Shown here: one piece after another, positions 1-60,149 of the stretch
How positions within the stretch are numbered: position 1 is the first letter of the stretch
Layout: every line of letters begins with the position of its first letter
Origin: Glycera tridactyla
Taxonomy: Eukaryota
Direction of reading: 5' to 3'
Assembly (NCBI GenBank): GCA_965644265.1
Contig: OZ286463.1
Span: forward strand, 94,798,001-94,862,000
Length of the DNA stretch: 64,000 bases
Translations under genes and position numbers: made by a program
The notes under the pieces: model-generated
What the model was told of the DNA's origin: nothing
What the model saw: only the letters and a program-made list of their open reading frames with translations
The model's database searches: none

Positions 1-3000
1 ATTTTATATTTTTGGTTCAAAGCTGCTTGTGAGTGATATATACTCCAATCATTACACATTTGGGATGGATGTCAGTTGTACATCCCATATGAGCATTGAT
101 GTTGTGGAAAGCAAACGTGAGACAAGTGGTAGATGACCCGTTGGATATGTAGGTGAACTAGCAGTATTAGGTTAGCTAGGGCTCATATCTAGGATGGTAG
201 TTAAGATGTATATATATGCTGTGGATGGGGCTACGGCTGTCCTGAGCTCTCAACAAATCAACATCGGACACAGGAGTTGATCAGAACATGGGACGGGATT
301 GACGGTGATTGTTCTTCTTATCCTGATTGAATTGTAGAATTGTGGCATTGCTCTCTTTGATTCAGTTCCGGTTGATTGGTACTTCTAGGAGAAAATGCCT
401 TCCCTCCATTGAATGATCTGTGGTATCTTATGCCTACCTTTCTCATTGTTATCCTGTAGGATATTGCCTTCACCTTCTCAATTGTTGTCATCTTCATTCA
501 ATGACAGTCAACAAGTTGTTGGATTTCTTTTCTGAATTAAATCGAGATTCACATCTATTTGAACTTCAGGGGCTTGTAAAATTATACAGTGCAAATGTTG
601 GCAAACACAATGGGATCAGTCACAATATTGAATTGGCTACCAAATGTTGGTAGCCAAACAATACATTGTCAATTACAACCCCTTGAAATGTTAGGGGCCA
701 TTGCTCACTGACTTTGAAAATATGGTAGCAAGAGGGTAAATTTGGTAGTCATTGGCTACCACAGGTAGCAACAAAAAAGGAGGATATGCTCTCTGTGTCT
801 AATCCTATTTCATGAAAAGATTCCTAGATTGGAAATCATACTTTCTTCGTAGCCTGGCTGATCATTTTGTCATCGGTCTCCTGGCTTTCATATCTCATAC
901 TGGAATGGCGTATCAAGTTGATGTTGAAATAAGTTTCTGATTTTGGGTGCTGACTTGCCTTCTTACTATCAGTGATCATTCAATGATTTGTGGCAATTGG
1001 ATGCTGAATAATCGTCTTGTGGTCCATGATCTGCATGCTGAATCTCATAGGGACAATCACTGCATGGGAGCTGCTGATTGAGATCATTTCTTGGTGTCTG
1101 TCAATTGATACAAATTATTATCTCCCCTCTAAAATAATGGCAATGTCATTAATTATGGTTCAGTGACAATAGACTGAGTAAAAAAAAGCGTTCACCAGGC
1201 TCCGGATACTATCAGTCGGATCCTCTTAGGCCATAAATTAGTAAAGTTTCCATGGAATTGCACATGTATGTGTGATCATTTCATGTTGGTTGGGGTGAAG
1301 GTCAAGGTGGAAGATGTCATGCAAAGATAATCAGCTCAGTTTCAGCCTGATTGTGATATGTTGTGAAGAAATTTCTTTGGCCTATTCTATTGACTGTGCC
1401 GTAATATACCAATATGGAAAAAAATTCAGCATAGTCATTCATTCTTTCATTCTTCCAATTTCTCAATGTCTTTGGTCATTGTCATTGTCAGTGGTAGTTT
1501 TGGGGTGAAAACTGATATTTACTTGGAAAACAATGCATTGTGCGTAGAAGTAGTCAAAGCAGCTTATGAAGAAACTGCAAACTGCTACATTTGGTATTGC
1601 CATTATGAAATCAGTGGTGTACAATACCTCAACAGCAGGACACATGTTGGTCTAGTAGTTGTCTCCCGATACAATTGGCGTTGCCATTTTATCACTCTAC
1701 TTGAATATATAAGCTATGCACTGATAAGATCAGTAATTTCTTTCCTGATCGAAATAACAATATTGATGCTAAGTGAGGTCTCTAAAGTTATTTCCAACCC
1801 ACTCTGCAGTTGGCCAAATTTTGAATCATTGCTTGAATGATGTTGATATTGTGGGTTTACTGCCAGCATTCCTGGAGGTGTTCCACATGGGTCTTCTGCT
1901 GGGGATACTCCAGTCAAGTCATCTTATGTCTGCAGTTGTTAATTCTCAACATCTAGGTTCTTGCTCTCATTCAGCTATAAACTTTCATGTTTGGCACCAG
2001 AGCATTGTCACTGATTATGATGATGAATTGCAAGCTCTGGGCAAGGGTTCAATGTCATGTTTGAATCACAACATAAGAGAGCTCTGTATGGTGGTTATGT
2101 GGAGTTATGTGATGTAGGATAAGAGAGGTATCGTGATTGAGGTTGGGAGGAACTGTTGTCTGATGTTTGATTATGATGAAGACTGTGTCAGTATTGTGAA
2201 TAGCTTGTGGTATGCTGTGTCTATGGCAGCTCTGCTGATCCTAGAGTACCAAAACAGATAAATGACTATCACATGTCCGCTTTCTTGGATGCCTCATGAC
2301 ACTTGATTGTGGGCGGCATGTTGTCATCGTATCACAGTTCTCTTGTCTTGCTTCAAGATCTGCAGATGATGAGCTACATGCAGGAGCTAGATGGAAGTAA
2401 TGGAGTTAGACTGCACCTGAGTATGAGAATGTCTGCACTGTATCATCATCTTGTACACATAGACCTTGCTGGTCTTGTCTGCCATGCCTCTTAACACATA
2501 GAATAGTCTGCACGATGACATCATATTTCAGTCAACAAACAGCCTGTCTTAGATGCAGGATGTCCCATACAAATCTCCCTTTTTCACTTAGGTCAGTCAC
2601 TCATCCGTAAACTAATGTGATTCATTATCTGGACGATTTCTTTTTTTTTTTTTCCAAACTCTTCCACAATTTATTTTCAAGGTAGACCTTATTTCAGTTT
2701 CTCATGAATTTCATCATTTGGGATTCGGTTCATCTGAAGACTTATTCTTCATCACCTATAGATTTTGGATGAAATTGGCATGATACTGGAAAATTGGCAC
2801 TCAGAAGAAAGTGGCCATTCTGTCATTGTCGTAGTTTATCCTATATTGTTGAGTTGTTTTTTCTTCAATTGTTTTGCACTTTGTGAGGTATTTTTTTGAT
2901 TTTGATGTCTTCCCTGCATGGACGAGTTTATTTCACTAAGTGGCATGATTAAATCACGTGGCTATGCCCAGTTTTGGTAACCACTAAAGATATATTTAGT

Positions 3001-5907
3001 TAGCACATTATTAAAATTTGTCCTCATAATCAATCAGATACGATCTCCCATTTCTCTACAAGTTGATTATTTTCACAATGCGGTTCAGATATTCTGGATT
3101 CTTTCCCCATATTGCTATTGCATATGCTACCATTACCCCCATCACCACCAAAAAAGTGGACATATCAATGGAAAGGAGACCACATGGCTAAGATTTTGAT
3201 TGCCTCCTGAAATTGCCTTTGCAGATATATTGATTAAAAGTCAGGCTATTTCTTTTCATTCTGAATTATTGGAAGATATAACCCCGTCTGTGAGGTTCAC
3301 GAGATGAAGTCAATGTATTCTATGCAGCATTTGAAAATTGCATCATTGTTCAACTCGTCTTCATTTTAATTCATCCTGATGAATTGTGAACAGGTATAGT
3401 CACCTGAAGGCATGAGCTTGTGCATCTCTCAGTAAATGAGTCTTTTACAATGGAAGTGATTGGGAAAGCAACTTCACAACAATTTTGCCATTCTTCGATA
3501 TAGGGCATGATATTAAATGGTTGGACATGTTATTTGTATGAAGAAAATAGTCTGTAACTGTGATTCTCCTTGGCTTCGCTGGATTTGATGTAGCAGTTCT
3601 TGATACTAGACTATCTTGATGTGGATACATTCTGCTGTCCTCTTGAGGCTTTCTTTATCCATTGTGTTTGTGTATGTTGGTAATCCAGGTGCTGATTCTC
3701 AAAGGATGGCTACAAGTTTGTGAATGCTGTCGAATTATGAAATCATGTTAGACATTACCACCATAAAATTTGACAGCTCCCAGTGTTGCCAATTTGGATT
3801 CATGATAATTCTTTTCAGGAATTACTTCTTTTTCATTCCTTGTATTTCAACTCGAAGTATCTCCTAAAGCTGACAAATTTAAAGCCCTCTATTACATACA
3901 CTTCAAGAGTGAATCATTATTTTTGGATTTTGACCTCAGCTGTGCATCAGTGTTTCATACCAGATAGGTCATATTTTGTCATGTTTTATTTGTATTACCA
4001 AACTTTGTATCATCTGAACTATTTCATGGAAAATTTTCATCCATTATTTGAATGTATATTGGCTATTTTTCCCCATCTTTTACACTTTCACAGGAAAAGA
4101 GGCTAGAGTGTATTTTACTGTTTTTTTCTATTCTATTTTCTAGGTATTTTAACGTCCAAATAAACATTGCCCTAATGGTATAGAAAGACATGTAAAGTTC
4201 CACTTGAATGGAGTTCAATCCTAGTTATGAGTAATTCATGGACATCGATATGAGTAAAATTTTGAGATTACAATGTTGGGTTTGTGTCTTCACTGATTAG
4301 AATCACTTATCTTTAGTGAGCAGGCAATGCAAATTGTTATTGAATATGATGGAATGTCATTCTTCTGAGCATTTTTATGTCCATACAACACCTGAAAATG
4401 AATGATGACGTCCTTTGACCATAAAGATGACCATAATGATGGTTGTAATATGCTAATATTCATCTAGCAATAATTGTCCCTCTATGATTGCTTTACACTG
4501 CATATCAGAGGTGACCACTGTTCTCCTATGTGAAAAAAGCTCCATAATCCATTGCAAATTCTGTATTCTGCTGAATAGATACACCAGGCGCATGAGTGTG
4601 TGGAAGAAGCCAACCTGTCATCATGCTTTTGCTTTGCATTGCTTTCATTAAGATTCAGAGATGATTTTGCTATCAGGGGTGTGATTTTTCTGCGAATCCA
4701 TGAACTTCTGTGTTTTTGATCACAAATGCAGCAATCCATGCAGTTGTTCGGGCTTCTTGGCCCACAAATTTTTGGTGAAAAGTGCCTCTGATAAAGTTTC
4801 CAGGGTTTGTGGTCGTTATCCAATCGCATCCTTGTATTATTGATCAATATCAGATTATATTGAGAAGGATACTTCGTGTAAGTTGTTGAGTGATATTCGA
4901 ATGTTAAAATGTTTCCAAAATTGCATAGTTTGTAAGAAGACAAGTATCATCTTGTGTAAGTGCAATTCATGGAATTTTTTGCCTAGGACGTAATTACCAT
5001 GCCCCCTCACATCCTCAAAAGGCAGTTCGATGCTTATTTGTGTGAGATTTGTGGTAATATGACTACCAATTTCTTGGCAAGATGTCTGGGATCTGTGTGA
5101 TCAGATCCATTTTGATTTGATATTCCAAAGAAAGGATCTTATCTCAAGTAATGCGGCATATCTATTCAGCAGAACAGACACTGCTATGTTTGCAAAGTCA
5201 TATTCTCACTAGTCAAATGGTCACATATCCTGACAGATGTGATGTCATCTAGTGCTGATTTTGCCATGACGCCCAATGATATTTTGTTGTTGTGGTGCTG
5301 GAGGATATTCTATTCCTATTCAGATAAGACTCTAGTAATCCTATACTTTGAAGCATTTTTCATTCTTCACTTTCATGGCCATAGGATTTTAGCGACTATG
5401 TAGATGTAATCACTTATCCAGAAAAAAAATTGAATTTGGCCGTTATATTCGAGTTCTCTTCTAATGCACTAAGTGATTTAGGGTAATTTTTCACATGCTG
5501 TATCAGTTATTTCTGTTTCAAGTTTCTGTCCATACTCACTACTTAAAAGAACGTGTAAAGCAGACCTTATGAGAATGAAAATTACAGAAATGAGATGCCA
5601 CCAATGTCGAAGACTAACAGATTGGGGGTTATTTCATTTCGATTGGTACATTATAGCAACCCACTTGTCATGTGCATCAGGGTATTCAAGTAATGGGCAC
5701 TGCATTGACTAGCCCATAGCCAGTCATTGCATGGGGCAAGTATTTTTCGGCTGTGTTTTAGATGATAATCGATTTTGTTGATTACACTTTTGGTGATCAT
5801 GAACTTCACTGCCACTACATTTTACTGTCTGTTGAGACTGCAGCTGACACATATACATTTTCAATGTGTTTTGGAATTAGTAGCAATTTTCATTGTTATG
5901 TTTGCAG

Positions 5908-6038
5908 GTTCAATGGACCCTTATTCTCGAGCGCCACGGTCACCCAAGTCTCGAACTCCCGCTTCACGACCACAGGGAATGGAAGGGCTAGCACAGACGC
6001 TGGTGACGGAAGAGAGCAAGTCACCAGTCAACGACCAG
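5908..6038 (+). CDS. STXBP5: Tomosyn (syntaxin-binding protein 5) internal exon, phase 1 to phase 0: (G)SMDPYSRAPRSPKSRTPASRPQGMEGLAQTLVTEESKSPVNDQ
   Basis: Acceptor atgtttgcag|GT at 5907/5908 and donor CAG|gtatgg at 6038/6039. The peptide matches the vertebrate tomosyn segment GSNDPYRREPRSPRKSR...KSPTS (recalled, not aligned). Confidence 0.88.
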
Positions 6039-7538
6039 GTATGGTACAATGCATTGCCCTTGCTCCCCTCCATACATCATTAGGACCATTCTCACTAGGG
6101 TTGTGAAATATCCTCTTATTCGTTCCGGTGATCCAGGTGCGCTGCATTTGGTACCATATGCTTTTTGGTTATATCTTCATCTATTATTTATTTTTGTCAC
6201 CAAGTTCTGGTTCCTATGTTGCTCAACCTATTTTCTCGTTCAGTTCAAAATCAGTTGCTATTTTAGTTGCTGCTTTCCACCTTTCATTAGCCAGGTTGCA
6301 TCGACACTTGCTACACTCTTGAAACCTCATTTTGCTTTGAAATATGCTCCTTTCAATTGTTTATGGATAAATTCATATCTATATTTTGATGATTCTGCAT
6401 TGTATGCCCTTGCTAGTCGAGCAGAGGAAGTAGAAGTTGGGTTGCAATATTTCATCCCCTATTGCTTGCAGCACTGGGTTATTCTATATCAGTTGCCAAT
6501 CAACTTGCTATTATCCTCGTTTCGTCCTCATTTTGCGAGTCTGCAGTCTTTTAGAGCTATCTCCTTTGTTTATTTATCCACCACACGATATTGAATGGTG
6601 GTCATTTCTTAGTTCTATCATCAGTTGTTTGCTTCTTCTGGCTTGTATTCCCATTTATTTTGAACTCATACTCTTCTTTAGTGTTCTTGCAACTTGCTGA
6701 TAATTTTGAGGAAGGGTATAGACTGCAATTATCACACAGCCTGCGTAGAATTCTTCATACTTCTTTTCACATTTACAATCTGTTAGCTATATTCACTTTT
6801 ACTTGCATACTTTGATATAAAAGCCTAACTCTATTGCTGTATATTCACTTTCATCTGAAACTACTGCCAAGGTGTTAGTAGTGATGAGTACATTCAATTT
6901 GACAAAGTTCTATTCATATTGCAAAGATACCTCTGCTTCTCATCATTATCATGTCCTAACTGTCAAAATCAATATTTTTCATCATTTGATAACCAATCAT
7001 ATTTTGAAGTTCAACTGCTAGCGACAATACTTGCGACACTCAAAATTGTGGTAGAAATGAAATTAGGCTTTTACATAGATGAATGCACTATAGTTTATGT
7101 AATGATCAAGATCAAGTCCAATGTCATTCTTTTCATGACTATTGAGTGTTTATTGGAATGATGAATGTGATAGAATACATCAATTGTAAAAGGTCACCCA
7201 TACTGAGTGACCATTAGTCAGTTCATCCAATGTATCTTATATTGGTGTAGTACATCTACCTGTCATTGCTGATATTATTATTGAGTCTTTCATTTATTGG
7301 TGATTGCAAGTTTTTGCTTTAAATGAACCAGTTGTGATATCTATATATCTATGTATGTATAGTATTCTTCATGAATGGTGTTTAATGATCATGCTTTTAC
7401 AGTCATTTGTTCAACAGTTACTCACTTAGAAAGTCCTGCATTTGATGTGATTTTCATGATGATCCAAAATATTAGACACATGCATGCATAGATACAGACA
7501 CACAGACGCAATCACAACCAAAAACACATGTGCGCGCG

Positions 7539-7542
<4 letters not shown>

Positions 7543-7573
<31 letters not shown>

Positions 7574-7590
7574 CCCCCACACACACACAC
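7543..7590. repeat. (CA)n microsatellite interrupted by a C-run
   Basis: Directly visible. Confidence 0.97.
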
Positions 7591-7991
7591 CATTAAATGA
7601 AGATTCATTTTATATTTTTCCTCTTTGTTTTCTAACTATATCATATTTGTAGTACCAACATATCTATCAATGTTCAGTTTTTTCTTCGGTTGGTCCTTCT
7701 CCATAGTTGTTCATTTGATTACACTTTGGCACTCAGTATGTGGTATATATTTTGTGGAATTTTGAAAGTGTGGAGGAGTATTTATCCAAAATGTGGATGT
7801 CAACCATTTGTGAGTCTTTTGTACTTTTCACATTTAATGCTTAGTGTATTGTCGCTTCTGTCCTCTACTAATTGTTGGAGTCATGGCAGGTCTTCAGTTA
7901 CTTCGATGAACCTTGTGTCCAAATGAACACATAGAGACACACAGGCACACACATATGTACATGCACACCCATGAATGCACACACATGCACG

Positions 7992-7997
<6 letters not shown>

Positions 7998-8070
<73 letters not shown>
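7998..8070. repeat. (CA)n microsatellite
   Basis: Directly visible. Confidence 0.98.
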
Positions 8071-8071
<1 letters not shown>

Positions 8072-10328
8072 ATCCAGTTAGTTGCAGTTCATGTTTTGTA
8101 TTTGTCATATGATATTCATCCAATCTGACATCTGATCAACATGTGCCAGTACAGCACTCTGCATTTTCAGCCGCTTTCAGTAAAGTTTTTTTCTACTTAG
8201 GGAAGTTTCAGGTTCGGTACACTCTTGTTCCTTGACTGTGATGATGGTTGCTATGATGACATCTAACCCCTTATGGCTGCTGACAGCATATAGGAACAAA
8301 TAGTCAGTTTGGCGTAGGTATAGAATCCTAGACTCCATCTACTCATCTGTGTACATCCTTTACAGTAATAATCAGCATCTCATGAAATTCCAACAGAGGC
8401 TTATTTTCTTGGCTTCCTGCCAGTCATTGCATATCCAGCTAAAGGTGTATTCGGTAACTGTTGTAACTCATGAAAAGTCGAAAATGAGTCTAGGATTGTA
8501 TCCTTAAACTGCTATTTTACTCTCATATGATAATTTAATCATGTTTGTTCTATTGATCACCAGGCAGTGTAGCTTGATTCTTCTTATCGTAATAAATCTT
8601 GCCGAGCAATAAGTCATCATGCATGTGGCATATATCCAGACCTTTAGAAAATATAGTTGCTGTCATCATGACTCACATGCAGCCTCTCATGTGGCTTACT
8701 CCTTGCTTGTGCTGGATCAGACTTTTTAGTTCTTTGATGTTTGATATAGGCTGCAGTTTTGAGAATATCTCTCTATTTCCAGGATGTATGATTGGTTGCC
8801 TGCTGGTGCCATGAAATAAGAAAAATGAAAGATTGAATATTATATTCAGACAGTGCTCACCATGATATGATGCTTCATGCATCCGCATGTGAGGGTGGAA
8901 AATATGGAAAACTCATTCTTCTTATTGATGCAAGCTGCATACTGTATGCCATTTATTTAAGATATTTCATGTAGGTGGTATGCTTTTGTTATTAGCTCTG
9001 CAGTCATAAGACAAAAATGATTCTTTTCTTTCAATATTGGCCAAACCAAATTGATAATCCAGATAATCCTCATCATGTACAAATATGTATTTAATTGTAC
9101 AACAGCTTGAATTACAAGTGGAGTTATCATGATGGGAAACTGAACTTGTAAGAAATATTTTAAACTGGTGGATTCAATTGGGAAAATCTGCACAGATCAT
9201 TTAGTTGTCTCTTTCTGAAAATATGAGATGAAGTTGTGATAGAAAAGGTAGAAAAAGAATGAAATAGTACCATTGTTTATATTATGTCTCACAATTTATA
9301 AGTGAGTTTTGCTCTGCTGTCATTCATTTTTTAGTGGTACTGGTTTCCACTGTTGCCCGTTTATGTTTCTAGGATAACGGCTCTCCTATTCCCACCATCG
9401 TAGTGCTGGATGAGTTGGAATATGTAGGTGTTACAAGCACTCTTATTGAGCTGTCTTTTTCTGTCCTTCTGCCAGACCCACCCACCCACCCATGGTGGCA
9501 CCACCTCGTTTAAGATACATGCCACCTTCCCATAATACCACAAGATGACTTAACATCAGTCAGTCATAGTCATACTAGCTCAGTAGCACAGTCTTTAAAA
9601 ACTAATAAATGCCAGATTCATTTTGAGCAGCCTGGGGCTTCATTTTGCACTCACCATCTTGCGTCTCCTTGATCACCAGTGACTAATTTTATTTGTCAGT
9701 TTGGGAGCAAAGTCATTTATGTCTGGACCATCTTTCAGTTTATCTGTTGCTTCTGATCTTCATTAGCAAGTAACTTTTGTCAGTATACACTTCAAAACTA
9801 GATGCCAACTCTTCAGAAATGATGGATGAGGCAAAATTGTTTTATTTTTTTTTTTACTCAACATCATCACATTCAAGATCAATTCCTATAAAATTGGAGA
9901 GGGAAATCAGAATGATAAGCCTAAATCAGTATTTATTCCAGTGACTTTTTGTTCGACAATTTCAAGAACAGTCAGTGCTTGATTATTTCAGGTATCATTC
10001 TTGATATCATCCAAGCGGGAGAATGAAGACATGAACACTTGCAGTCAGACTAGGGGTATCCCTAATTTATGGATCAACCCAGAGTTGTGATACATGCAAT
10101 TCTATTGCTGATGTTCTTTAGGAAAGCCATGATCACTCCCCTCCACAGTTCTTATGCACCCACACATTGTCGAAATCTTTTCTGAATTCTCCTAAGATTG
10201 GGCCACCATGGTAGCACTTGAGATGTATATTTCAATGTATGTTTCCATGTACCATCATAGAGTCAGTCTGAGCATGGAAAAAATGAACTTTTTTCCACGG
10301 CCCAGAATTGACTTGTGATGAGGATTCA

Positions 10329-14949: not shown

Positions 14950-16130
14950 CGGTACTGCCAGTCAGATTAGAAAGTTGAAGCTTTCAGAATCCATCTGGTG
15001 GCTATTGTGACAAGTTGATGTAGTGTCCGGATCATTAGGACATCATATGACTGTAGACGCTCCTGGCGAATCTGTAGAAGGTTGTGCCAGCCCCAGCCCT
15101 TGTTGAGGAAGGGCTCTTCGGAGATGTGAACCGCGTCAGCATCCATTCCAGTTTTGAGTGAACTCATACTTGAGTGAAGAGCCATACACTATCCTCTGAT
15201 TTGATAGATGCTGTTGAACTCAAACTAGTCAACCAAGGAGGGAAGTCAGAAAGGAGAGAAGCAATAGGAAATGAAGATGACCAAAGGGAATCGTTGGCTG
15301 AGACGGTGTTCTTGAGAAGGGCACTAGGGTGTTAGGTATATCATCAGGCAGTGCATCATCAAATGAGGTGATAACCTAATGAAACAGGATGTCACCAGAC
15401 AGATATCAGATGGTATTGAACAGTAGTATCGGACAATTGTTAGTCACAGAGACGTTTTTTTCTGTGACAGCATGAAGGATGTAAAAAGCAGTGTGAGATC
15501 ACATAAGGTCAAGTTTATGTGCCTCAAACATGTACTATCTTTGTTGATGGGGAGAAATTGAAATTAGGAATACCACAAGGGGCAAAATATAGATGTTTAT
15601 GGGAAGGGTTGAAATGTCGCTCATCAGTATAGCAGGTGATCATCTCCTTGAGATATATCAGATGATATGACAACATAAATTTATATTGGTGACATACAGG
15701 GTAATGTAGGAACCCCCCACCAACACCAACAATACCAACACCAAAACCTGATATCTCTCCATCAATAATCAGACACATTGAGATCCACTTCATCTCTCAA
15801 CTCTTGATATGTTTGTATTGCACATGTTGTGGGATGTCAGCAGGGGCAAATTTGGGGCCAGTTGGAGTTGGGGAAGTCTGAGAAGATATACTCAGCAAAC
15901 TCAATGGTATTTCCTGCTCTGTTTGCCATGGTCAGTGCAAGTTACTAAGAAATGCGACTCATGGGGAAGTATTCATATTCCACTTCGAGTCACACCCTAG
16001 GTATCTTACCATTAGCAACAGACAAATTGATCAGATATATTACCTGAGATGAATCCTGTTGGATGTCATCAGAAGATTGAGGTGCTTTAAGAAGGTGAGA
16101 GATACTTACGAAGCATTCAGATCTCATGGA
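14950..16130 (-). mobile_element. Decayed LINE remnant (C-terminal RT region)
   Basis: Minus-strand RYLGCDSKW (cf. RYLGV.FDSKL.W) and PPWL motifs; no intact ORF. Confidence 0.35.
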
Positions 16131-16230: not shown

Positions 16231-16371
16231 NNNNNNNNNNNNNNNNNNNNNNNNNNNNNNNNNNNNNNNNNNNNNNNNNNNNNNNNNNNNNNNNNNNNNN
16301 NNNNNNNNNNNNNNNNNNNNNNNNNNNNNNNNNNNNNNNNNNNNNNNNNNNNNNNNNNNNNNNNNNNNNNN
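16231..16371. other. Assembly gap (141 N)
   Basis: Run of N flanked by CCTGTCTGCCT and TCTATC simple sequence. Confidence 1.
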
Positions 16372-25534: not shown

Positions 25535-28500
25535 CATCAGGTTCGTACCATGTCGTTGTGCGCCTTGTTCTTGCCCAAGAGTGTTGATTTGCCCTCATGC
25601 ACTTCGCTACTATTTTTCATCTTCAGAAGTTGGAGTCTATGACTCTATATCAAATGCTATGGCACTGCATGATTATTACAATGAGGGCACATATCATGGC
25701 TAAGAGAGTAGCTCATGATAAAATTAAGTGGAAGGTCAGTAGAATTGGAATTTTGGTCTGGGAAAAGTCAGTGAAAGTTGAAGAATTTCACTTCAGGGTA
25801 CCTGGAATCATATCTCATCCCTAATGGTATCTATATCGTTGACTATATATTTTACTCTTACACGCTGAAAGTGACTTCTTCAGCCCATAACCATCCAGTG
25901 TGTGCAACAGCTCAACCCAATGTAACCCCTATGACTTATATCCATAGTTGGTTTGTATTTCTCATATTTTCAACTGAATCAATTTTTTACCATTCTCTAT
26001 GCAGTGAATACCTTCTGCTTGAAATAATGATTTTCAAATAGATATTTGCACAAAGACTCATTCTTAGCCTGCATCTCATACTATAATGTAGTGTCTGGGG
26101 GAATGGGGGATACTTCTGAGCTATAGAGTGTAGGTCATCCAGAATAATGACGGCACTTGTGACTGAACGATATGCAAACATAGTTGTTGACGAAGTGGCG
26201 AATGTCTTCTGTGATTCATGCACATGTGCATGTTGGCTTCATTACACCCAGTCGGAGCATTGGTCGACATGATTGGTCAGTATCATCTGATTGTTCTGTA
26301 ATATTTTGTCATGTTCAAGTCATATTGTTGGTTATGGTTCATGTTTGGCTGTACATTGTTCAATTTTTTGAATGCTTGTCTTTTGAGTTGGTATTTTGGT
26401 TCGGTGTTTCATTGTGTTTATATTGTATGATTTGGGTCTCTGTTTATGCTGCAGCCAGGTCCTTCATATATTTTCTTGACTACCCTGTATCAAGAAATAT
26501 GACCACAGTCCCGAAATTATTCAGAACCCTAGCTACAATTTATTGGTTCCTCTTCAAGTGGTACTCCATGTAGAATGATATTCCCTAAGGATATTGAAAT
26601 TTGCAGTCAATTTCACTTCTTTTATGGCCTTTATTTCTTGGGATTCTCGCCTTCAGCATGTGAGCTGAAAATGTCATTCTCAGTGAGAAATATGTTTGGT
26701 TGATTGTCGCTACAAATGGAAAGTACATATTGCTGACAACTTTCTAAGATCAGAACTTCAGAACGCTATGAAAAACACTCTGCCTATTCTTACAGGCATG
26801 ACAAAGCAATTGTGACATAGAGCAGTTTCAGCACACATGTTCCATCCATGAACAATGTAACCCGTGTTGAGAACTTATCAGTGTCGAGATTTACGATCAA
26901 GTCATTACAGTGTGACTATTGGTTCTGTCAAAGCCCATTGTTCTCTTTAAGATATTCCTGAAAAACAAAGGTCATGAGAAATGTAGAAATGATAGTATCT
27001 TTCAATGTCCATGTGATGCTGTTTTAGTTATAGATTCCTTGTCCTCTCCAGGTGATATATCTCTTGTAAGCTTGGGGTGTCGGTTAGGAAGAATATCACG
27101 TGTGGAAATCAGGTTTTGGATGAGGTGTCCAACGACCTTTTCCTATGTAGGTTGCTGATCACCAGAGCCCTGACTTTTCATGCTTTTGGATTTGTTGATT
27201 CCACCTCAGATGATCATCAACTATTTTCTGTCATAACAGTTTGACACCATACCCCCTTATGGTGCAAGAGACTAACATGATCTTGTTTAGTTGACATAAT
27301 CTCTCATATACCAGTAGTCATTTTTTGGTGACTGCTGTCACATGAAATCCAATTTAACTTCCATGACAGCCAGTATAATGATGAAGGCTAGTTCCTGAAT
27401 ATGCCAATATTCAGAAGGCATCAAATATAACTTCCTCTTCATGATGGAGGTACGACATGATTTATATATGGACATTCTTCAATATCCAAGTTTTGAATTA
27501 TTCAATGTGATCAAGAGCTACCCAGCAGGAGCATCCATAGAACCGGAACAGATCAGCAGCATCCTCATAGGCACACTGTATCTTGAGTTGTTAAGAATTG
27601 GGTTATCACATGCTTGTCATATTCTTTTTGTATCCCATTTTCTCTTTCTACCAGCTAGTTATCGTTTTTTCTTTGAGGTTCATAGTTTGGTATTGAAATT
27701 GACTGATGATATTAGGCCACCCCTGACATATGTTCTTGATTGCATCACTGGAATTTAAGTGAATGAATTATGCCAGCTTTCTGTATGAAACTCTTGTACC
27801 AATCATTTTGGTAGCACTGTGGTGGTAAATGAGGATGTCACTAGAATCTCAAACTTTGTCTTTCCTCTCTGTTGCCAAATGCTTAGGCATCTGGAATCTT
27901 TATTTCAGTCCATTATTACTCATTTTAAAAAAAGAAATTCTGTGTTTCACGCAAGACTTGCTTTAGATACCACCATGATCTTGAATGGATGATCGTGCAT
28001 TGTATAAAACTCCAATTGAAATTCAGCGGGAGATCTTCAAGTTGGGTTTATAGTACTGAACAGGATACAGACACAACTGTGTGGGTCTAAAATACCTAAA
28101 ATTAACAATCTAAATTGGTAGAAAGTCATGACACAAATGATACTTGTCAAACACATGGGTTGTATCACAAAGTGGGCCATTGTAAAATAGATTTTCAGTT
28201 TGAGAAAATATATTTGTAGTGCAAACATGGTAAAATGAGAAATATGATATTGACATGGTACGATGGAAACCTGTCAATATTTTCCTCTTGCCAGAGCCTC
28301 TCAATTCGGAAAGCCGTTAATCATGTTGTTTTCGTTTAATTTACATTGGATGAAGAGCCTATAAACTTCAATCAATTCTGGGTTTTTTCTTTCAAAATTG
28401 AGATGTAAAGTTAATCACATGTCAAATGATGAAACTTTTCGAAGTGGACTTATTGGCTGGATGAATGAAGTTTTGGCTGATATGATTTGGCTTTTTGCTA

Positions 28501-29074
28501 ATGTTCTTATGCTTTTTGTGTTATCATGTACCACTATAGAAATATATTCATGAGAATATGAATGCCAATTGCACAATGTTTACTGCTCATTCAGTGGTGT
28601 CTACCGTAGTTCAAGAATTGTGTTGATTTCTCCATTAGCAGTATTCCATTATCCATTTTTCTTTGTTGAGTCTTGTTATAGATTTCAAATCTGCTTTTTA
28701 TTTTGTTGTCATAGTTGCAGAGTCCTTGATAGCAAAGGATTGATTAATTCACCTATTTCAGCCAATTGGTATGGATTCGGTCACTAAGTCAAACATTTTA
28801 CCTTGACTATACATGAGTTTTTGATGAGACATTCAATTTATTATTCAGATGTTGCTAGGAACTTTCTATTGCTGCTTTCTTCAGCATATTATTGTGACTT
28901 GTCTGGTTATCTGAAAAATAATTTGATTCTCAATGAATATCCATCATTACTATACCTCATTAGGCATAATTCTAGCATTACTAGTGTGTTTATTTCAAGT
29001 TTTGTTGAGAGTTTGGGTTTATGTGGTGTCGGGGCAATATAAGTTGATAGGTGTTGTACTCGATTCTGTTTCAG

Positions 29075-30158
29075 TGTGTGTTTCCCATTCCTTCCCCTAC
29101 TGCTATCAACACAGTGACCGGTCAGTCAGTTCATCCAGTTCTCAGTGCTACAGTTACTAATGCGACTGCACAACCCCCACCAAGTCCTGGCCGAGGGCGT
29201 ACTGTGATGGGGTTGCAGTGCATCAGTGAGTATTGTGAGCGTGAAGAACGCTGCATCGATGACGTTGACTCAAGCACTAATGGTGAAAGCACTGACCCTG
29301 CCGAAATGTTACAGGTACATGACCCCAATGCCAACTTCAAGCAGCACGGAAAAGACACTAACGATAACATGGATCTCGTACACAACTCCAATGACCACTT
29401 GAATGTTCAAAAGAAGCCACTCTCATTGTCTAAATCACTGCCAATACAAGAAAAGAAAGGTAGAGGGAGACAGTCCCCCAATATCACAGAAAGTGTCAGT
29501 GTGACTTGCCCCCTGAGATTTGAGCGCAGTCCTTCTAGTCCTGATGAGACAACAACATCCGCAGAAACTGTTATGCTCAGTCCCTGTCCAGAAGCCACAT
29601 GTCAAGATCTGGAGAGTGCTGATGTTAAGAAAAGGAAGCATCCGAGCTTGCTGCGACGTTGGACCCGTAGTAAAGAGCATCAGCATAGACAGCAGGACTC
29701 CATGTCCCAAACTAGCAGTTCTCAAAATATTAGTAATCTTGACCAGATGACCGTGACCCCCACTGACCCTTCTCATCTGCGAGACTGTCACTCTGAGACG
29801 GACTTGTCACACCTGACCATTGATGTGAATAAGACGGCACCCCCAACGACAGATTCAGGTTCATCAACCCCGTTAGGTGAGGACGAACCTCCAACTCCTT
29901 CCTCAGGGGTACAGTTACGCTCAGGGGGCTTTGTTAGACGGATGAGCCAAAAAATACGGAGCTCAATGCTGATGATGAAAACCAATGAGGATCTTCCAAA
30001 TCGTGAATATCCAGAGGAGAAGTATGCGAGTGGTTCACCAACATCGCGTAAAGCCAAAGAAGCTGAAGTGAAGTTTGAGTTCTTGGATTTGACTTCGAAT
30101 GAGATTGAAGCAAAGGCACAGATGAAAAAGACAAGCTATCAAGGATATCTCTCCATGG
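29075..30158 (+). CDS. STXBP5: Tomosyn large alternative exon A (1084 nt, phase 0 to phase 1), ~361 aa of S/T/P/D-rich low-complexity loop
   Basis: Longest ORF in the window (29051-30169, 372 aa) and CpG-retaining. Phase-0 acceptor gattctgtttcag|TGT at 29074/29075; phase-1 donor ATG G|gtatgt at 30158/30159, with a stop three codons later. The phases fit the flanking conserved exons exactly. The acceptor choice is less certain (phase-1 alternative acag| at 29114). Confidence 0.7.
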
Positions 30159-30749
30159 GTATGTTGTAATAGGTAGTAATTTAATCCTATTGCTGGCTGA
30201 TTTTCTGCAGGGCTTGCTCTCTGTTCCTTGAACATATATATGGCTGTGTGTGATATTGCAACCCATAAAGGGGGTAATTATGTAAATGGGAGAGTTATTT
30301 GAAGGTCTTCAATCAAGATATCAAGGAAGTGGATTCATGCCACAGCCAGATATATGTCAATTAACAGTCAACAATGCTTATGTGACTTTTTGTAGCAGAT
30401 TTTCAGGTGCGTATTTCACTTTCTTCCAATCCTCCACTGACTTCATCAACAACTTACCAGAAACAATCTGCTTCATCTTTAATCACATTTTTTCCTTTCA
30501 GGTTTTTATCTATGCAGTGTGATCTTACCTATCCATTCAGATTATGCTTTTCGAGTCTGTAATTGTTATTTGTATAATTATCATCAATATTTGCTTCATT
30601 TTCATAATGCTGGCGTGGATTCGATATGTTTTCCCCAATGATGAAGCTTTCCTGGATCTGTCTGTCTATGACTCTTTGCACTGGGGTATTTCATGTTGGA
30701 ATCATGTTCTGAATAATCAAACAGTCTCTGTTTTCTTCTTCCATTGTAG

Positions 30750-30885
30750 ATAAATGGTGTGTGTCTAAGTCCTACTAATACAAAACAAAAGAGAGCACAC
30801 CCACCTGATTTGAAACGGCAAAAATCGCAAGGTACCCGTAAAATAGTGAAAGCGCAAAGCAGTATTTCCCTGGAGGAGGCTAACG
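30750..30885 (+). CDS. STXBP5: Tomosyn alternative exon B (phase 0 to phase 1): INGVCLSPTNTKQKRAHPPDLKRQKSQGTRKIVKAQSSISLEEAN; 3' end uncertain
   Basis: Strong acceptor ttttcttcttccattgtag|ATA at 30749/30750. The peptide resembles the STXBP5L loop as recalled (VNGHCTSPTS...RKAQSAACMEIS). Phase-1 GT donors are possible after 30831, 30861, 30885 or 30894. Confidence 0.75.
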
Positions 30886-33526
30886 GTGGAGGAGGTGCTA
30901 TTTTTGTTTCTACAGCTACACCGGCATGTGTATCCCAGTCTGAAATAGTTCTGCAATCTGCTGCTCCCCCAACACGCTGCACATTATAGTCATCCATTGT
31001 CAATTAAAAAGTCAGAACCTTCATCAGAAGAAGTGTTGAATTCAGGACATTTTGAATGGCAATTGGTGATATGTGTCTTGCATACTGTGCACATATAGTG
31101 ACTAAATCAAAGCATCCAAGTTTGGTGATGCATTTCACTCAACATATTTATGTTCATACACATTATATCTGTTGTTGCCGCCAGCTCATCTCACTGTTTG
31201 AGGATTCTGTTGATTAGGCTAGTCTCATGAAACTAACATTTTTATCTAGTCTTCTCATTCAACTTGAATATCTATTCTACTTTTTGACTTTGAATATCTT
31301 TCAGTTTTAAATAGATTAGTACCTATGCTATTAGTCTCGCTACAAGCGTCCAGTTCTCTCAGTTGCCTCCTTCACAGTGTCCTTTTTTGGCAACTACCAT
31401 CATCTGCTTTTAAACAACCCTTCCATGGCGGACTGAATTCTTTATTAAATCCTTTACTAAAGAAAAGAAATGGGACCCCAGAGGGTCATATTGCATGCTG
31501 ATGTGGCTGCAATGCAATGGCCCAGTGGTAGGTGGACTAGAATTGCTTCAATGTAACAGAGTGAAATTTTTCAAATTTCTGTCCACCCTGAAAAGAGTTA
31601 GATTGCCAAATACAGATGTTTTCACAATATTTGATGCACCTTGCATCATCAGTCAGATTCTAGTGTAGTCGAAGGTAGTCAATCATTGTTCTGGTGTGAC
31701 ATAGTCCTACCTGGTTACTAATGTGACCATTGGCTATTTGTTATGTTCAATTTTACTAATCGCATTCAAATTATTGACTGTTGATGCATTTCAACGTTTT
31801 TACTAATAAAGCATGTCTGTTTATTCATTGTAGCACACAGCAAACCAATATATGTGTTGTAGTTGTGCAGAATTTGACCACAATTTGGAATCAAGAGTAA
31901 AATCCTATTTGCTATAGTCCCCGGTAAAAGCAGTTTTGTTTTGGCTGATAAGGGTGTGGTATATCATCGTGTATATGAGTGTATGTGTGTGGGGTTGTTG
32001 GGTGATTGTGTGCCTGTGTATACCTGCATGGCTGGGTTTGTGTGGGTGTGTGTGTGTTCAGAATGCTTCTGCTAGATTAAAACTGTGTGTAGTACAAGTA
32101 TAAATGAAGATTTCAATTTTTTAATTGGAAAGGCATGTGTTTGTGGACAGAAGAAGTTATAAAGCATATTGTTCTTGTTTTTCATGCAAGGTTTACTTGA
32201 TTGACACTTGGATTGGAGCCAGTTACATTCTGCTGTCAATCGTTTCAGAGGTTCACTACTACTCCTACATATCATTTGATGTTCAGATTCTTATCACATG
32301 CACTGTTTGCATTTACTTGTGGCTGAACATTCCTTCTGTCAGTGGTCTGCCAGGTGGTAAGTCCATCATGGTCAAACTAGCAGACACACACTTTACTCTG
32401 TCGTTGGTAATCAGTGGCAGTCCGGAATGAAACCCATATATGCCATGCCTGTATCTAGCCTATCATTGATGAAGAGTAACAGTTGAAATAGTCCAAATAA
32501 CAATAATCAAATACAGATACAGTAACCATGATGGGTATCATAGAACTTCCTGGATATCACATCTGGCTAGCTTATTCATTCACAATCACAATCAAAATCT
32601 GTTGTGCTCGTAATGATGCATCAACAAATAGAATCATGTATGAAGGTGACCAGACTCATTCTGTTTTTCCATGACACTAGCCACATTTGGAATTCCTTCT
32701 GAGATTTTTTCGCCAATTGCAAATGTAATTCATGCAATCTTCATTCTGTTGCTGGTCATTCAAACCATGCATGCAATTCTTCGGTTCGTTATTCCCAATG
32801 TGCATGAAATGGCACAAATCCCATCCACATTGCCTTTATTTGGATTAGCTTGTGTTTTGAACATTTTATTTTCTGCTTATTCCAGTTTGCTTACTGTTTA
32901 TTTGTTGGCCCTGCTTCCAGAAGCTGGTTTCCCCTCTGATCTTGTCAAGAGGGACGTTCATATTTGCTTTCGTTGTTTTTATAGGACCAGGCCTTTTTAT
33001 TCATGCCCTCCCCAGCCAGTAGTACTTTGTACATCTGGAGGTAACAGTCAGTATGTTTGTTGTGTGGACAGTCAATTGAATTGCTTCTCTGTGAGTGCTA
33101 TAGCTTAAAGAAATGAATCTCATCTGTTCAAACATTGATGATTGAATTGCATTTATTATTGATCAGAGGAGCGATGATGTAGGTTTTTTTCACATGATGG
33201 TCACATGATCGTAAGATTTGGCTGAAAAAACTAAATGAAAACAGATATTTGAACTTGAAGATCAGGTTGTTGATAGTGGAAGGAGGATTTGTACTTAGAT
33301 TCATGAATGTGGATGTGCAGAAATTGATTCTTTCAATGTTCATGCACATTCATCTTCCTATTTAGGATTGCAGGTTTGAATGAAGGTCAAGGTCAGCATT
33401 CAAAATTACTGGATCCGCATCATCATTACTATCAAAATTTGGAGATTAGTTTGAATATCTCACAGAATTTGTCTTTTCCCACTATTATCTCCTCCTTTCG
33501 AGAATATTTTCCTGGATTCAATCTTT

Positions 33527-33527
<1 letters not shown>

Positions 33528-33592
<65 letters not shown>

Positions 33593-33601
33593 GTGTGTGT
33601 G
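33528..33601. repeat. (GT)n microsatellite
   Basis: Directly visible. Confidence 0.98.
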
Positions 33602-54277: not shown

Positions 54278-54394
54278 ACAAGACGGATAGTTCCTTTTCT
54301 CGATCACGCAGCTCCAGTATGTCCAGTCTGGAGAATATCACCAAAGAGGCGATATCGTGCCTCGTGTTCGCTGACGCTTATACCAGGAAATCAG
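54278..54394 (+). CDS. STXBP5: Tomosyn internal exon (phase 1-1): (D)KTDSSFSRSRSSSMSSLENITKEAISCLVFADAYTRKS
   Basis: Acceptor gttgcag|AC and donor TCA G|gtgatg. Matches the tomosyn signature DNSFSRSRSSSVTSIDKESREAISALHF..TFTRK (recalled). Confidence 0.93.
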
Positions 54395-55247: not shown

Positions 55248-55370
55248 ATCTGATGACGGTCCCATGCTTATGGGTGGGAACCAGTTTAGGATCAGTACTA
55301 GTCATCAATCTACAACTTCCAGCAGAAGGCGACCCACGGAAAACACAACCAGTGATTGTTTCACCTAGTG
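55248..55370 (+). CDS. STXBP5: Tomosyn internal exon (phase 1-1): (D)LMTVPCLWVGTSLGSVLVINLQLPAEGDPRKTQPVIVSPS
   Basis: Acceptor cttgttttgccag|AT and donor AGT G|gtaagt. Near-identical to vertebrate PCLWVGTTLGTVLVIALNLP...QPVIVSPSG (recalled). Confidence 0.95.
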
Positions 55371-55582: not shown

Positions 55583-56420
55583 TTTTTATCCCTCGCCAAA
55601 AGGCGTAGGGATATTAAAATAGTGGCCGTCCGTCAGTCCGTCAGTCTGTCAGTCCGTCAGTCTGTCACACTTTCTTGGCTGTGCAACTCCTCATTCATTT
55701 TACATGCGATTTTCACCAAACTTTCACAGAATGATCATCATAAGGTTATGCAGTGCATATTGTCAGGGTTTCATGATCAGATTATTTTTTGAGAAGTTAT
55801 AGCCCTTTTTTGAATTTTACATATGAATTATTGGCTGCACAACTCCTTCATTTTACATGCTATTTTCACCAAATTTTCACGGAATGATCATCTTAAGGTT
55901 CTGCAGTGCATATCATTAGGGTTTTGTGATTGGATTATTTCTGAAGGAGTTATTGCCTTTTTTTGGATTTTACATGCATTTTTGGGCATATTTTGGCACA
56001 TTCACTATGTCTGTACTGTGAAACAGCCCCCTGAATGAACACACCTCTTTCAGCTTTGCCCTCATTAATAGGTCAGCTTCTCCATAACCAACGTATTCTT
56101 TTGTTCATACAGTGTTTGTGATATGTGAGACCTATACAACTATTCTGAAGCCATTCATTGACCTGCGTCGATTACGTCTGGAGACTCCTCTATTCAAACA
56201 CANNNNNNNNNNNNNNNNNNNNNNNNNNNNNNNNNNNNNNNNNNNNNNNNNNNNNNNNNNNNNNNNNNNNNNNNNNNNNNNNNNNNNNNNNNNNNNNNNN
56301 NNNNNNNNNNNNNNNNNNNNNNNNNNNNNNNNNNNNNNNNNNNNNNNNNNNNNNNNNNNNNNNNNNNNNNNNAAAAAGCACCCATGGCGAGGGATACACT
56401 GTCTGTGACAGCTTCTTGTT
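55583..56420 (+). mobile_element. HINE-like element, family 3 (spans an N gap)
   Basis: 5' TATCCCTCGCC (55587-55597) with inverted GGCGTAGGGATA, a (GTCC/GTCT/GTCA)n tract and ~2 internal units. 3' GGCGAGGGATA (56386-56396), hairpin CTGTC-TGT-GACAG, end CTTGTT. Confidence 0.8.
56203..56372. other. Assembly gap (170 N) inside HINE-like element 3
   Basis: Run of N. Confidence 1.
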
Positions 56421-57016
56421 CAATATCAACTGATCAGGGCCTCTTCTGGCTTGCCAGTGAGAACTGAATGGCCCTTTTTGGTTGCCTAAATGGCCCCATG
56501 ATGTTTCCACACTTCTACTCAAATGGGCCAGTTCAGTTTGCCTCAACTGATACCTAAAAGGGCCTCTTCTGGGCCATTCATGAACCTGAAATGGAGTCAG
56601 ATCAGCCTTAACTGAACCAGAAATGGGCCAGTTCATATCCATTTAGCTTTCCCTGACTGAACCATGAAAGACCCATGAACCCCAATCAGCCTTTCATCAT
56701 AGGTTTGGTTTCACGGGTGGAAAGTCTTACAATGGAACCCTATGATACAAAACAATCTTCAAGCAAGCCCAGTACTAAGCAAAATCCGATCTTGGGTACA
56801 ATTCTGAGTTTATCCAATCAGAATATGAGGACCATATCTGTATAGAGCACCCTCTGGGTCAGGCAACATCCTTTCAAGATATGCACTTCTGTAAAATTGG
56901 TCAGAAGAAAGGTGGGAATATTGAAACAGTGAAATGGTTCTGAAATGGCTTGCCATTTCCATCCACATGGTCATTGCATGAATGGATGTTCAAGAATGAA
57001 TATGTTTGCATTGTAG

Positions 57017-57145
57017 GTACAATATTCCGGTTAAAGGGTGCGATAGTGGCAATGTCTTTCTTGGACTGCAATGGCGTACTAATACCAACCATAACAGATC
57101 AGTGGAAGGATGCGGGTCGGGAAGACCCCAACAAGAAGTACAACA
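57017..57145 (+). CDS. STXBP5: Tomosyn internal exon (phase 1-1): (G)TIFRLKGAIVAMSFLDCNGVLIPTITDQWKDAGREDPNKKYN
   Basis: Acceptor tttgcattgtag|GT and donor AAC A|gtatgt at 57145/57146. Matches GTILRLKGAILRMAFLDTTGCLIPPAYEPW (recalled). The 3' boundary is inferred from the best GT before the stop at 57202. Confidence 0.9.
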
Positions 57146-59002: not shown

Positions 59003-59474
59003 CAGAGGCCAACATGGATGGATTTACTTGAGATGAATCCGTCCTGTCTTGACAGTGAGGTGGATTTCAACTGCGAGCTTATTATCTACAAAATATCTAA
59101 CAACTTATACGGTTATTTTCCACTTGTGAGCCCAGTTACATGGGAAATTTAGACAGATTGTAAAGCCATGAAGGGTATTTCATTAAGATACTGTCCTCAT
59201 CCTGGCTGTCAGTGCCTAGTGATGAAATGATGTTCATGCGAGTTCTCATTGTCTGTGTTTGAGAGACCCAACTTCCAGGAATCAGAAAGTACTCACTAGT
59301 GAAAGTTGTAGGTTGATTTCCAAATAGTGTAGCACAGTAAATGAGAATATTACGAAACTGATTTTTGGGAGGGGGTTACCAACTTATGGATGAGCTCTGA
59401 TCATATCTGCTCCCAGAAAATGAAAAATCTATTCTTCTAATGACTCTATTTTGCCTGTTGTTCATGGTCATTAG

Positions 59475-59744
59475 CATCTAAAAAACGGTGGCACTCCAGC
59501 ATGGCTGCTATTTCTGAAAAGAAGACCTCCCCTCCCCGAGCTCGCAGAGCAAGTTTCTCTGACGTAGTTGAAGAGGTAATGGTTGCACGTTCACAAGGCC
59601 GCAAGTGGAGAAACCTTGCCCGCTATCATGACTGGCCTAAGCAGATCCGTAAAGCAAAGCCAGTCGTGCGGCGGCGCGACCGGTGGCGCAGTGGGCTGCT
59701 GTGTTGCGGGAGTCGTTATGCAGCGGCCGCGCAGTCGGGGGATG
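59475..59744 (+). CDS. Candidate 270-nt symmetric (phase 1-1) tomosyn exon, Arg/Lys-rich: SKKRWHSSMAAISEKKTSPPRARRASFSDVVEEVMVARSQGRKWRNLARYHDWPKQIRKAKPVVRRRDRWRSGLLCCGSRYAAAAQSGD
   Basis: Consensus donor GAT G|gtaagt at 59744/59745. In-phase acceptor tgttcatggtcattag|CA at 59474/59475. About 20 CpG in 270 nt within a CpG-poor intron; no stop codons. Confidence 0.7.
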
Positions 59745-60149
59745 GTAAGTGGGATGAATGAAGGTGGTTAGGTACTTGGATCTGTCGGGTTGGGTGCACT
59801 TGGACCACGTCTCTCTCAGACTTGTTGCCATGATGGCTCTACACTTGAATAACATACATAAGAAACCCTCTAACATCTGGAGTGAAACACTAACCACTTT
59901 AAAGAAATTCATCTCAAAGTCTCATCAGTTTCTTCTTCAAATAGTACACCTCATGCTATGCTTTAAAGTTTGAGGGTGAGTCCCTTTATCAGGGTGAGAG
60001 ATATTCCTGAAACATTTGTGTGTCTTAATCCACTAGTGAATCTTAATCTTTTGCTGAAATTGTATGAAATTCGACTCATTTACACTAAATCTGAACCTGT
60101 TAGTCAAATTTGACTATTGCTGGATTTTTGTCACCCCAAATTGAGTACA

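Follow-up and report, generated by a model that had tools for sequence, protein, structure and literature searches.

A probable pair of frame-enforced, mutually exclusive loop exons in a predicted tomosyn gene of Glycera tridactyla

Introduction

The window analyzed in this study is a stretch of 64,000 nucleotides (nt) from Glycera tridactyla (NCBI GenBank assembly GCA_965644265.1, contig OZ286463.1, positions 94,798,001 to 94,862,000, forward strand), and all positions given below are counted from its first letter. It carries the loop and beta-propeller exons of a gene that, judging from related loci, is a tomosyn (STXBP5 type). Between two constitutive exons of this gene lie a long exon and a short exon, here named A and B. 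Our analysis indicates that A and B are probably a mutually exclusive pair, exactly one of which is needed to keep the reading frame.

Tomosyns consist of an LLGL scaffold followed by an R-SNARE tail, and the R-SNARE motif separates tomosyn from Lgl. The protein is a brake on synaptic vesicle fusion and sets synaptic release probability.

Results

The locus and its gene

The coordinates of the features are given in Table 1. In nucleotide strings a slash outside brackets marks a splice boundary.

Table 1. Features of the tomosyn loop region in the window.
Feature	Position	Strand	Description
Upstream constitutive loop exon	5909..6038	+	SMDPYSRAPRSPKSR...SPVNDQ; reads ...SKSPVNDQ; phase-0 end at ...GAC CAG/GTATGG
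GTGTTGT element	29051..29057	+	18 nt upstream of the A acceptor, in a G+T-rich tract; resembles the CELF/UNC-75 motif (G/U)UGUUGUG
Exon A	29075..30158	+	1084 nt (3n+1), 361 codons + 1 base; long, fast-evolving, low-complexity loop insert
A-B intron	30159..30749	+	591 nt, GT..AG; removal seen in one X2 contig
Exon B	30750..30894	+	145 nt (3n+1), 48 codons + 1 base; INGVCLSPTNTKQKR..KR.KSQGTRK...; conserved weak donor GGAG/GTGCT
A-to-B stop	30776..30778	+	TAA; 116 nt upstream of the B donor
Downstream constitutive exon	54278..54394	+	x/AC AAG: DKTDSSFSRSRSSSMSSLENI...; phase-1 start
Next exon	55248..55370	+	beta-propeller strand ...PCLWVGTSLGSVLVI...; contains TGA 55251-55253

The window stops before the part of the gene that encodes the SNARE and holds loop and propeller exons only. 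The gene family was assigned because two of the related loci, which are designated L001 to L011, carry an LLGL domain and a synaptobrevin-like SNARE, respectively. In L006 the LLGL domain (PF08366, E = 5.3e-13) was found in the open reading frame (ORF) 2863-3105, on the same strand as the loop exons and 4 kb upstream of the homologues of the upstream exon, A, B and the downstream exon. In the more distant locus L010, ORF 14965-15240 matched Synaptobrevin (PF00957, E = 1.2e-7, 31.8 bits against a cut-off of 26.4) and lies 4.7 kb downstream of the homologue of the downstream exon, also on the same strand. An Atlas look-up with the spliced homologue P0038 retrieved Lgl_C, LLGL and Syntaxin-binding protein 5 clusters (top score 0.95). 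Single exons submitted to the same look-up matched a generic beta-propeller or nothing at all. A Pfam scan of the window's own exons and of the spliced homologues gave no match, the pieces being too short; neither the downstream exon nor B retrieved anything relevant from PDB by sequence, and a literature search on the peptide FSRSRSSS found no match.

Both constitutive exons have counterparts. The homologue of the upstream exon ends in ...GAT CAG/GT in L003, L004, L005 and L006. The downstream exon begins AG/AC AAG ACG and reads (x)AC-KTDSSFSRSRSSSMSSLENI..., and this phase-1 start means that it requires one base from the preceding exon. The ORF around it matched 42 homologous fragments with the pattern ...DK.D.SFSRSRSSSMSSLENI....

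Frame relations of exons A and B

Exon A is bounded by the acceptor tttcag/TGT and the donor ATGG/GTATGT, and exon B opens at the acceptor ttgtag/ATA. Both exons have a length of 3n+1 and are flanked by a phase-0 donor on one side and a phase-1 acceptor on the other, so that the frame is kept only in mRNAs with exactly one of them. Either exon placed alone before the downstream exon produces the identical junction codon G/AC. Joining A to B gives G/AT AAA TGG TGT GTG TCT AAG TCC TAC TAA, with a stop after nine codons of B, and skipping both leaves the transcript out of frame through 54278-54394 until the TGA located 4 nt into the second downstream exon. Thus each exon alone keeps the frame, and both or neither lead to a premature stop.

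These results confirm most of what the sequence-only reading of this DNA had proposed, namely the phases of the two constitutive exons, the run of A from phase 0 to phase 1 and the positions of both premature stops. We also agree with its statement that a spacing of 591 nt between A and B is too long for steric exclusion. For exon B, the proposed start at 30750 was retained; the proposed end at 30885 was moved to 30894 on the basis of a donor, GGAG/GTGCY, that is conserved in five other assemblies. A second donor inside B, CAAG/GTACC after 30831, is conserved as well and would yield an exon of 82 nt (3n+1); a shorter B of 27 codons is therefore possible from the sequence.

Exon A is the longest open run of the window, with 372 codons compared with 195 for the next longest, and the stop-codon frequency predicts about 5e-6 chance runs as long as this. 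Its G+C content is 0.48 compared with 0.36 in the flanks. An alternative acceptor for A at 29115 has a strong pyrimidine tract and was rejected because it enters the wrong frame. A naive splice-site and frame scan for further 3n+1 exons in the 48-kb interval was uninformative, since with its thresholds it failed to recover even A and B.

Conservation of the exon pair in related loci

The comparison covered six loci: the window, L003, L004/L005 (two contigs of one assembly), L006, L007 and L008. L009 is a near-identical copy of the L008 region from another sample. The ORF starting at the B acceptor matched seven fragments with the pattern INGVCLSPTNTKQKRPHPP(D/E)LKRTKSQGTRKIQKAQSSASM(E/D)..., in which similarity extends over 45-50 residues and ends there. 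In every relative contig fetched (L003-L009), an ORF of 400-500 codons was found a few hundred bases 5' of B. The exon at the position of A measures 937 nt in L003, 1216 in L004/L005, 1492 in L006, 1171 in L007 and 1288 in L008, and the homologue of B measures 142, 139, 151, 139 and 145 nt in the same order; all of these lengths are 3n+1. In these loci the upstream exon ends in ...CAG/GT, the A donors are G/GTATGT, G/GTGAGT or G/GTACGT in phase 1, the B homologues end in GGAG/GTGCY, the A-B intron is 549-1063 nt and the downstream exon starts AG/ACAA. In all six loci, reading from A into B meets a stop within 7-10 codons. Comparison of the pair with other loci, as the sequence-only reading had recommended for A and B, thus found the same layout and the same phases in five other assemblies.

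The flanking exons could be reached in L003, L004/L005 and L006, where the introns are 0.9-4.2 kb compared with 23 kb in the window. Comparison of L003 with the others by tblastx recovered the flanking exons, B and two islands within A; nothing else in the interval was consistently conserved, which argues against a hidden third exon that would restore the frame. The short contigs L001 and L002 contain the downstream exon only.

In L010 the downstream exons are accompanied by an A-like exon and then a B-like exon (MNGVC...RKSRSQGGKKLQKCLSTAS...) in the same order, and the A-like ORF ends ...GNFMRRFS at a phase-1 GTAAGT donor. The presence of the pair in L010 indicates that it predates the split of that lineage from the lineage of the window. 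In this AT-rich distant lineage the B-like exon (L010 4605-4860, L011 2074-2310) has an insert of about 35 residues in its middle and keeps both ends, MNGVC... and ...RKSRSQGGK.LQKCLSTAS. The two ends of B therefore look like its constrained parts, judged from these sequences.

A separate observation concerns intron size. The introns on either side of the pair (6039-29074 and 30895-54277) are about 23 kb each in the window, and the A-B intron is 0.5-1.1 kb everywhere.

Coding character of exons A and B

Exon A returned zero matches in a word search and in an exhaustive HMMER search against 1.84 billion representatives, because it is too diverged and too low in complexity for sequence search. 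Its homologues were located by position only, and the A exons are 19-25% identical to each other. They have several motifs in common: KKPL..SKSLP; a polybasic KK(R/K)R..SFF.KWR; HSE.DL; G(F/I/L)M(R/K)R(M/L)S, which is an RRxS-type kinase site; K(F/I).F(I/L)DLT; and a terminal (K/R)K.(T/S)Y. The overall pattern, as far as sequence can tell, is that of a disordered, fast-evolving linker.

Exon B shows the opposite character. Analysis of the six loci revealed 23 invariant residues and a ratio of nonsynonymous to synonymous substitution rates (dN/dS) of 0-0.66. Variable columns are distributed 13/7/23 over the three codon positions, and all insertions and deletions (indels) are multiples of three. 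Frame 0 is free of stops in all six loci compared with two to six stops in the other two frames. This coding-type conservation occurs solely in the frame entered from the phase-0 upstream exon with A skipped, from which we infer that B is translated in that frame and that B-only mRNAs exist.

The synonymous sites of B are also constrained. Between the window and L003, 29 of the 37 conserved degenerate residues in B use the identical codon, compared with 37 of 87 in three neighboring exons (Fisher p = 3e-4), and the synonymous rate dS of B is 0.28-0.97 while the neighboring exons are saturated. Constrained synonymous sites are typical of regulated alternative exons and commonly indicate exonic splicing signals. 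The introns adjoining B are not alignable between species. Comparison of A with B by BLASTP found a best match of 11 residues (E = 0.11), and the two lengths differ seven-fold; with no similarity between them, A and B were rejected as a tandem-duplicated, homologous pair of mutually exclusive exons.

RNA contigs

RNA contigs from four runs were placed on 27500-33400. Three of the runs are from the same organism, with a library type only guessed to be RNA, and one (X5) is a marine metatranscriptome and a true RNA library. The contigs cannot give abundance, stability, tissue or strand. An X1 contig of 940 nt covers 29556-30158, and its next 30 letters match the first bases of the downstream exon exactly. 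An X5 contig of 335 nt contains the same junction and differs at 19 of 281 positions, which at about 93% identity indicates that it comes from a relative. Contigs of two studies thus contain the junction from 30158 to 54278 with B skipped, and this use of the donor at 30158 establishes A as a real exon.

An X2 contig of 185 nt joins 30158 to 30750 across a GT..AG intron and reads 2 nt beyond 30831. A is therefore sometimes joined to B through its phase-1 donor, which gives the frameshifted, stop-containing form; a join through an internal phase-0 donor of A, which would have made the combination readable, is not what this contig shows. The junctions named for checking by the sequence-only reading were thus recovered in part, 30158 to 54278 in X1 and X5 and 30158 to 30750 once, with none found for 6038 to 29075, 6038 to 30750 or B to 54278.

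Contigs cover 46-70% of A in each of three runs, reaching 29140-30158, and 0% of the A-B intron in the four runs. Positions 29075-29139 were without contig cover in all four, so that the A acceptor has no confirmation from these RNA contigs. Among the codons of A that changed between the window and the X5 relative, 9 of 17 changes are synonymous, as are four of five variants within the species; these variants support the reading frame of A.

Unspliced contig pieces of 151-170 nt from three runs cluster downstream of B at 31996-32832, and most of the surrounding intron has none. This segment is not conserved in relatives, and its other copies in the window are TG microsatellite only. Possible sources of the pieces are pre-mRNA, DNA carry-over and an independent transcript.

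CELF/UNC-75-like element and RNA folding

In Caenorhabditis elegans, the exons that UNC-75, a neuronal CELF protein, represses are marked by (G/U)UGUUGUG in their upstream intron, and tom-1 is among the validated targets (PMC3627589). A GTGTTGT was found within 60 nt upstream of A in four of the six loci: the window, L003, L006 and L008, the last having it twice and including the full 8-mer. None of 40 other acceptor regions in the related loci contains the same motif, and it is absent upstream of B. The copy at 29051-29057 is a candidate CELF element and a speculative lead, its putative function being carried over from the worm study.

A search for inverted repeats around A and B revealed no docking/selector-like pairs and no long complementary arms. 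The minimum-energy fold places a 10-base-pair (bp) stem (AGUGCUUCCA with UGGAGGUGCU) over the B donor in five of six species; in the window (30859-30899) the weak donor GGAG/GUGCU can pair with AGUAUUUCC about 25 nt upstream, a pairing that is not energetically significant. RNAalifold and RNAfold energies for B were no better than those of shuffled sequences (z from -0.5 to -1.1, and +1.1 in L006). Covariation is scored unfavorably for the donor stem, with only two compensatory pairs, and a stem at the 5' end of B is invariant and without covariation. The suggestion of the sequence-only reading that RNA structure might police the choice consequently found no significant support, given the lack of complementary arms and fold energies that do not improve on shuffled sequence. 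Separately, a 17-nt inverted repeat (30232-30248/30341-30357, 94% complementary, 92 nt apart) forms a local hairpin in the A-B intron.

Other features of the window

A further conserved exon of the same gene lies at 57010-57123, with 76% identity to L003 16986-17099 by tblastx. At 59444-59758 there is a G+C-rich (0.55) open stretch with an Arg-rich peptide, without a Pfam match or an L003 tblastx counterpart. Among P0003-P0042, many arthropod-like genomic fragments conserve (T/M)GR(V/A)DK just upstream of the ...DKLDSSFSRSRSSS exon, which could reflect an earlier exon start in these fragments or constraint on the acceptor region. Long (TG/CA)n microsatellites occur at 7426-8128 and at about 33500-33600, with a similar repeat at 32029-32060. 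Two runs of N, at 16231-16371 and 56203-56372, were kept unchanged.

Discussion

Comparison with known exon pairs

A frame-enforced exon pair in tomosyn is already described in worm and fly, and the principle is not new. The tom-1 gene of C. elegans contains the mutually exclusive exons 13A (490 nt, repressed by UNC-75) and 13B (124 nt, activated by UNC-75), both 3n+1 (Kuroyanagi et al. 2013, PMC3627589). The window resembles tom-1 in the gene family, in the order of a long exon followed by a short one, in the 3n+1 length of both and in a frame kept by exactly one of them; the worm also has the UNC-75 motif upstream of repressed exons, and here GUGUUGU lies just upstream of the long exon. The window differs from the worm in a long exon of 2-3 times the length, in much longer introns and in a regulation that is deduced only from a motif, and the likeness described here is one of layout.

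In Drosophila, tomosyn exons 13A and 13B are mutually exclusive and specify a loop that projects from the WD40 core (Sauvola et al. 2021, PMC8612732). Conservation across insects is high for one alternative and poor for the other, and both isoforms rescue release, 13B being weaker on overexpression (PMC8612732). The window pair is similar in being mutually exclusive loop exons of which one (B) is conserved and the other (A) poorly conserved. The two pairs were likened by description, and the fly pair has been functionally tested whereas the pair reported here is known from sequence and RNA contigs. The fly precedent named in the sequence-only reading is thus correct (PMC8612732), and the worm precedent is closer still.

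The vertebrate loop variants named there as b, m and s also have a published basis: two papers (PMC3948876, PMC1514790), citing Groffen et al. 2005, describe variable-domain splice variants s, m, b and xb of tomosyn-1 and tomosyn-2. The vertebrate loop contains kinase sites and the SUMO site K730 in SLPTDLKPDLDVKD; tomosyn-s1 lacks this SUMO site as a result of exon skipping. Splicing in vertebrates affects the same loop as in the window, between the PYxRxPRSP... exon and the ...SFSRSRSSS... exon. It differs in that the vertebrate variants are described as skipping of cassette exons and not as a frame-enforced choice of one exon from a pair. B resembles a vertebrate exon only weakly (LSPTN...PDLK compared with SLPTDLKPDL).

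Frame-incompatible mutually exclusive exons policed by nonsense-mediated decay (NMD), such as FGFR2 IIIb/IIIc, are usually of similar size and related by duplication. As in such pairs, double inclusion or double skipping of A and B leads to a frameshift and a premature stop upstream of an exon junction; unlike them, A and B differ seven-fold in length and share no similarity.

Evaluation of the alternatives

The reading of A and B as a mutually exclusive pair, with a choice between a 361-codon and a 48-codon loop exon and premature stops in the wrong combinations, was put forward by the sequence-only reading and is supported by the RNA contigs, the conserved layout, the coding frame of B and the worm and fly precedents. 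We regard it as probable. Several observations weigh against it. The A-to-B contig of X2 shows that exclusion is not absolute at the splicing step, and its depth is about as low as that of the A-to-54278 contig, so that double inclusion may not be rare. No contig in the four runs joins the upstream exon to A, the upstream exon to B or B to 54278 within 27500-33400, and B-only mRNAs are deduced from conservation. The runs were picked by words of A itself, which biases them toward A-containing RNA, and a few intronic pieces of 151 nt in the three best runs (28035-28446 and 31996-32832) indicate some pre-mRNA or DNA in the libraries. The LLGL and SNARE parts were found in the loci of relatives, outside this window. 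With respect to the putative CELF element, L004 and L007 have variants of GTGTTGT only, the full 8-mer is confined to L008, and the UNC-75 8-mer is not enriched over the window (10 matches compared with 8.75 expected).

These RNA data would also suit a gene in which A is effectively constitutive and B is a conserved poison exon that tunes tomosyn output by unproductive splicing, as A to 54278 and A to B are the sole junctions seen, the nucleotide conservation of B exceeds the need of the protein, as in conserved poison exons, and the A-derived frame ends within 7-10 codons of B in 6/6 loci. We nevertheless consider a purely unproductive B unlikely. Its changes fall preferentially on the third position of frame 0 (13/7/23), its indels come in multiples of three, its dN/dS is below 1, and frame 0 is open in 6/6 loci compared with four to six stops in the A-derived frame; this substitution pattern requires translation in a frame reachable only without A. 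Worm and fly, moreover, produce both proteins. The two roles may coexist, B being coding without A and poisonous with A. It is very unlikely that exclusivity comes mainly from competing RNA base-pairing, whether by docking and selector sites or by a stem hiding the B donor, as in insect Dscam or 14-3-3zeta. The 10-bp stem over the B donor in five of six species, in which two substitutions of the window preserve pairing, would fit such a mechanism, and the synonymous constraint of B could reflect structure; against this stand energies that do not improve on shuffled sequence, unfavorable covariation with two compensatory pairs only, the lack of long complementary arms linking the introns around A and B, and B-flanking introns that cannot be aligned between species. 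Finally, an unrecognized exon in one of the 23-kb introns could alter the phases and turn A and B into ordinary, combinable cassette exons. The introns of the window are very long, contigs were placed on 27500-33400 only, and intronic pieces from three runs lie at 31996-32832. A, however, is spliced straight to 54278, relatives with introns of 0.9-4.2 kb lack any additional block of consistent conservation between the flanking exons, the sole candidate acceptor that the scan gave near 32061-32308 is crossed without splicing by the contigs there, and 31900-32900 has no other copy in the window except TG microsatellite. An exon of this kind is extremely unlikely.

Proposed model

For the mutually exclusive pair we propose that inclusion of A or B would give two versions of a disordered loop, of 361 or 48 residues, off the WD40/LLGL scaffold of tomosyn. 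Regulated splicing, and neither steric hindrance nor RNA pairing, would make the choice. A CELF-type factor might silence A in neurons at its G/U-rich acceptor region, so that B is used there, and elsewhere A would be used. The conserved weak donor of B and its constrained synonymous sites may be part of this control. Wrong combinations would lose the frame, meet stops that lie 116-117 nt upstream of the following junction, and would be expected to undergo NMD. The observed A-to-B contig would fit splicing that is imperfectly exclusive.

A wider form of this model, which we hold to be doubtful, would make the pair a neuronal switch of ancient origin that nematodes, arthropod-like animals and this marine invertebrate clade have in common. 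Silencing of the long exon by CELF through GUGUUGU would then predate their split, the A+B form with its stop would be a used output that lowers tomosyn dosage, and the synonymous sites of B would be the exonic half of the control.

Significance

Beyond the worm and fly precedents, this study adds a corrected end for B, an architecture with phases conserved in at least five further assemblies and one distant lineage, frozen synonymous sites in B, an acceptor-proximal GUGUUGU and an out-of-frame A+B transcript that was observed directly. For annotation, gene models that contain both exons or neither are wrong, the end of B is 30894, and exon A is real and transcribed even though sequence search detects no homologue. 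For the tomosyn family, the retention in distant invertebrates of a choice between a 361- and a 48-residue loop points to two forms of the protein with distinct functions, one with the conserved B and one with the rapidly evolving A, and possibly to a very old CELF-dependent neuronal splicing programme.

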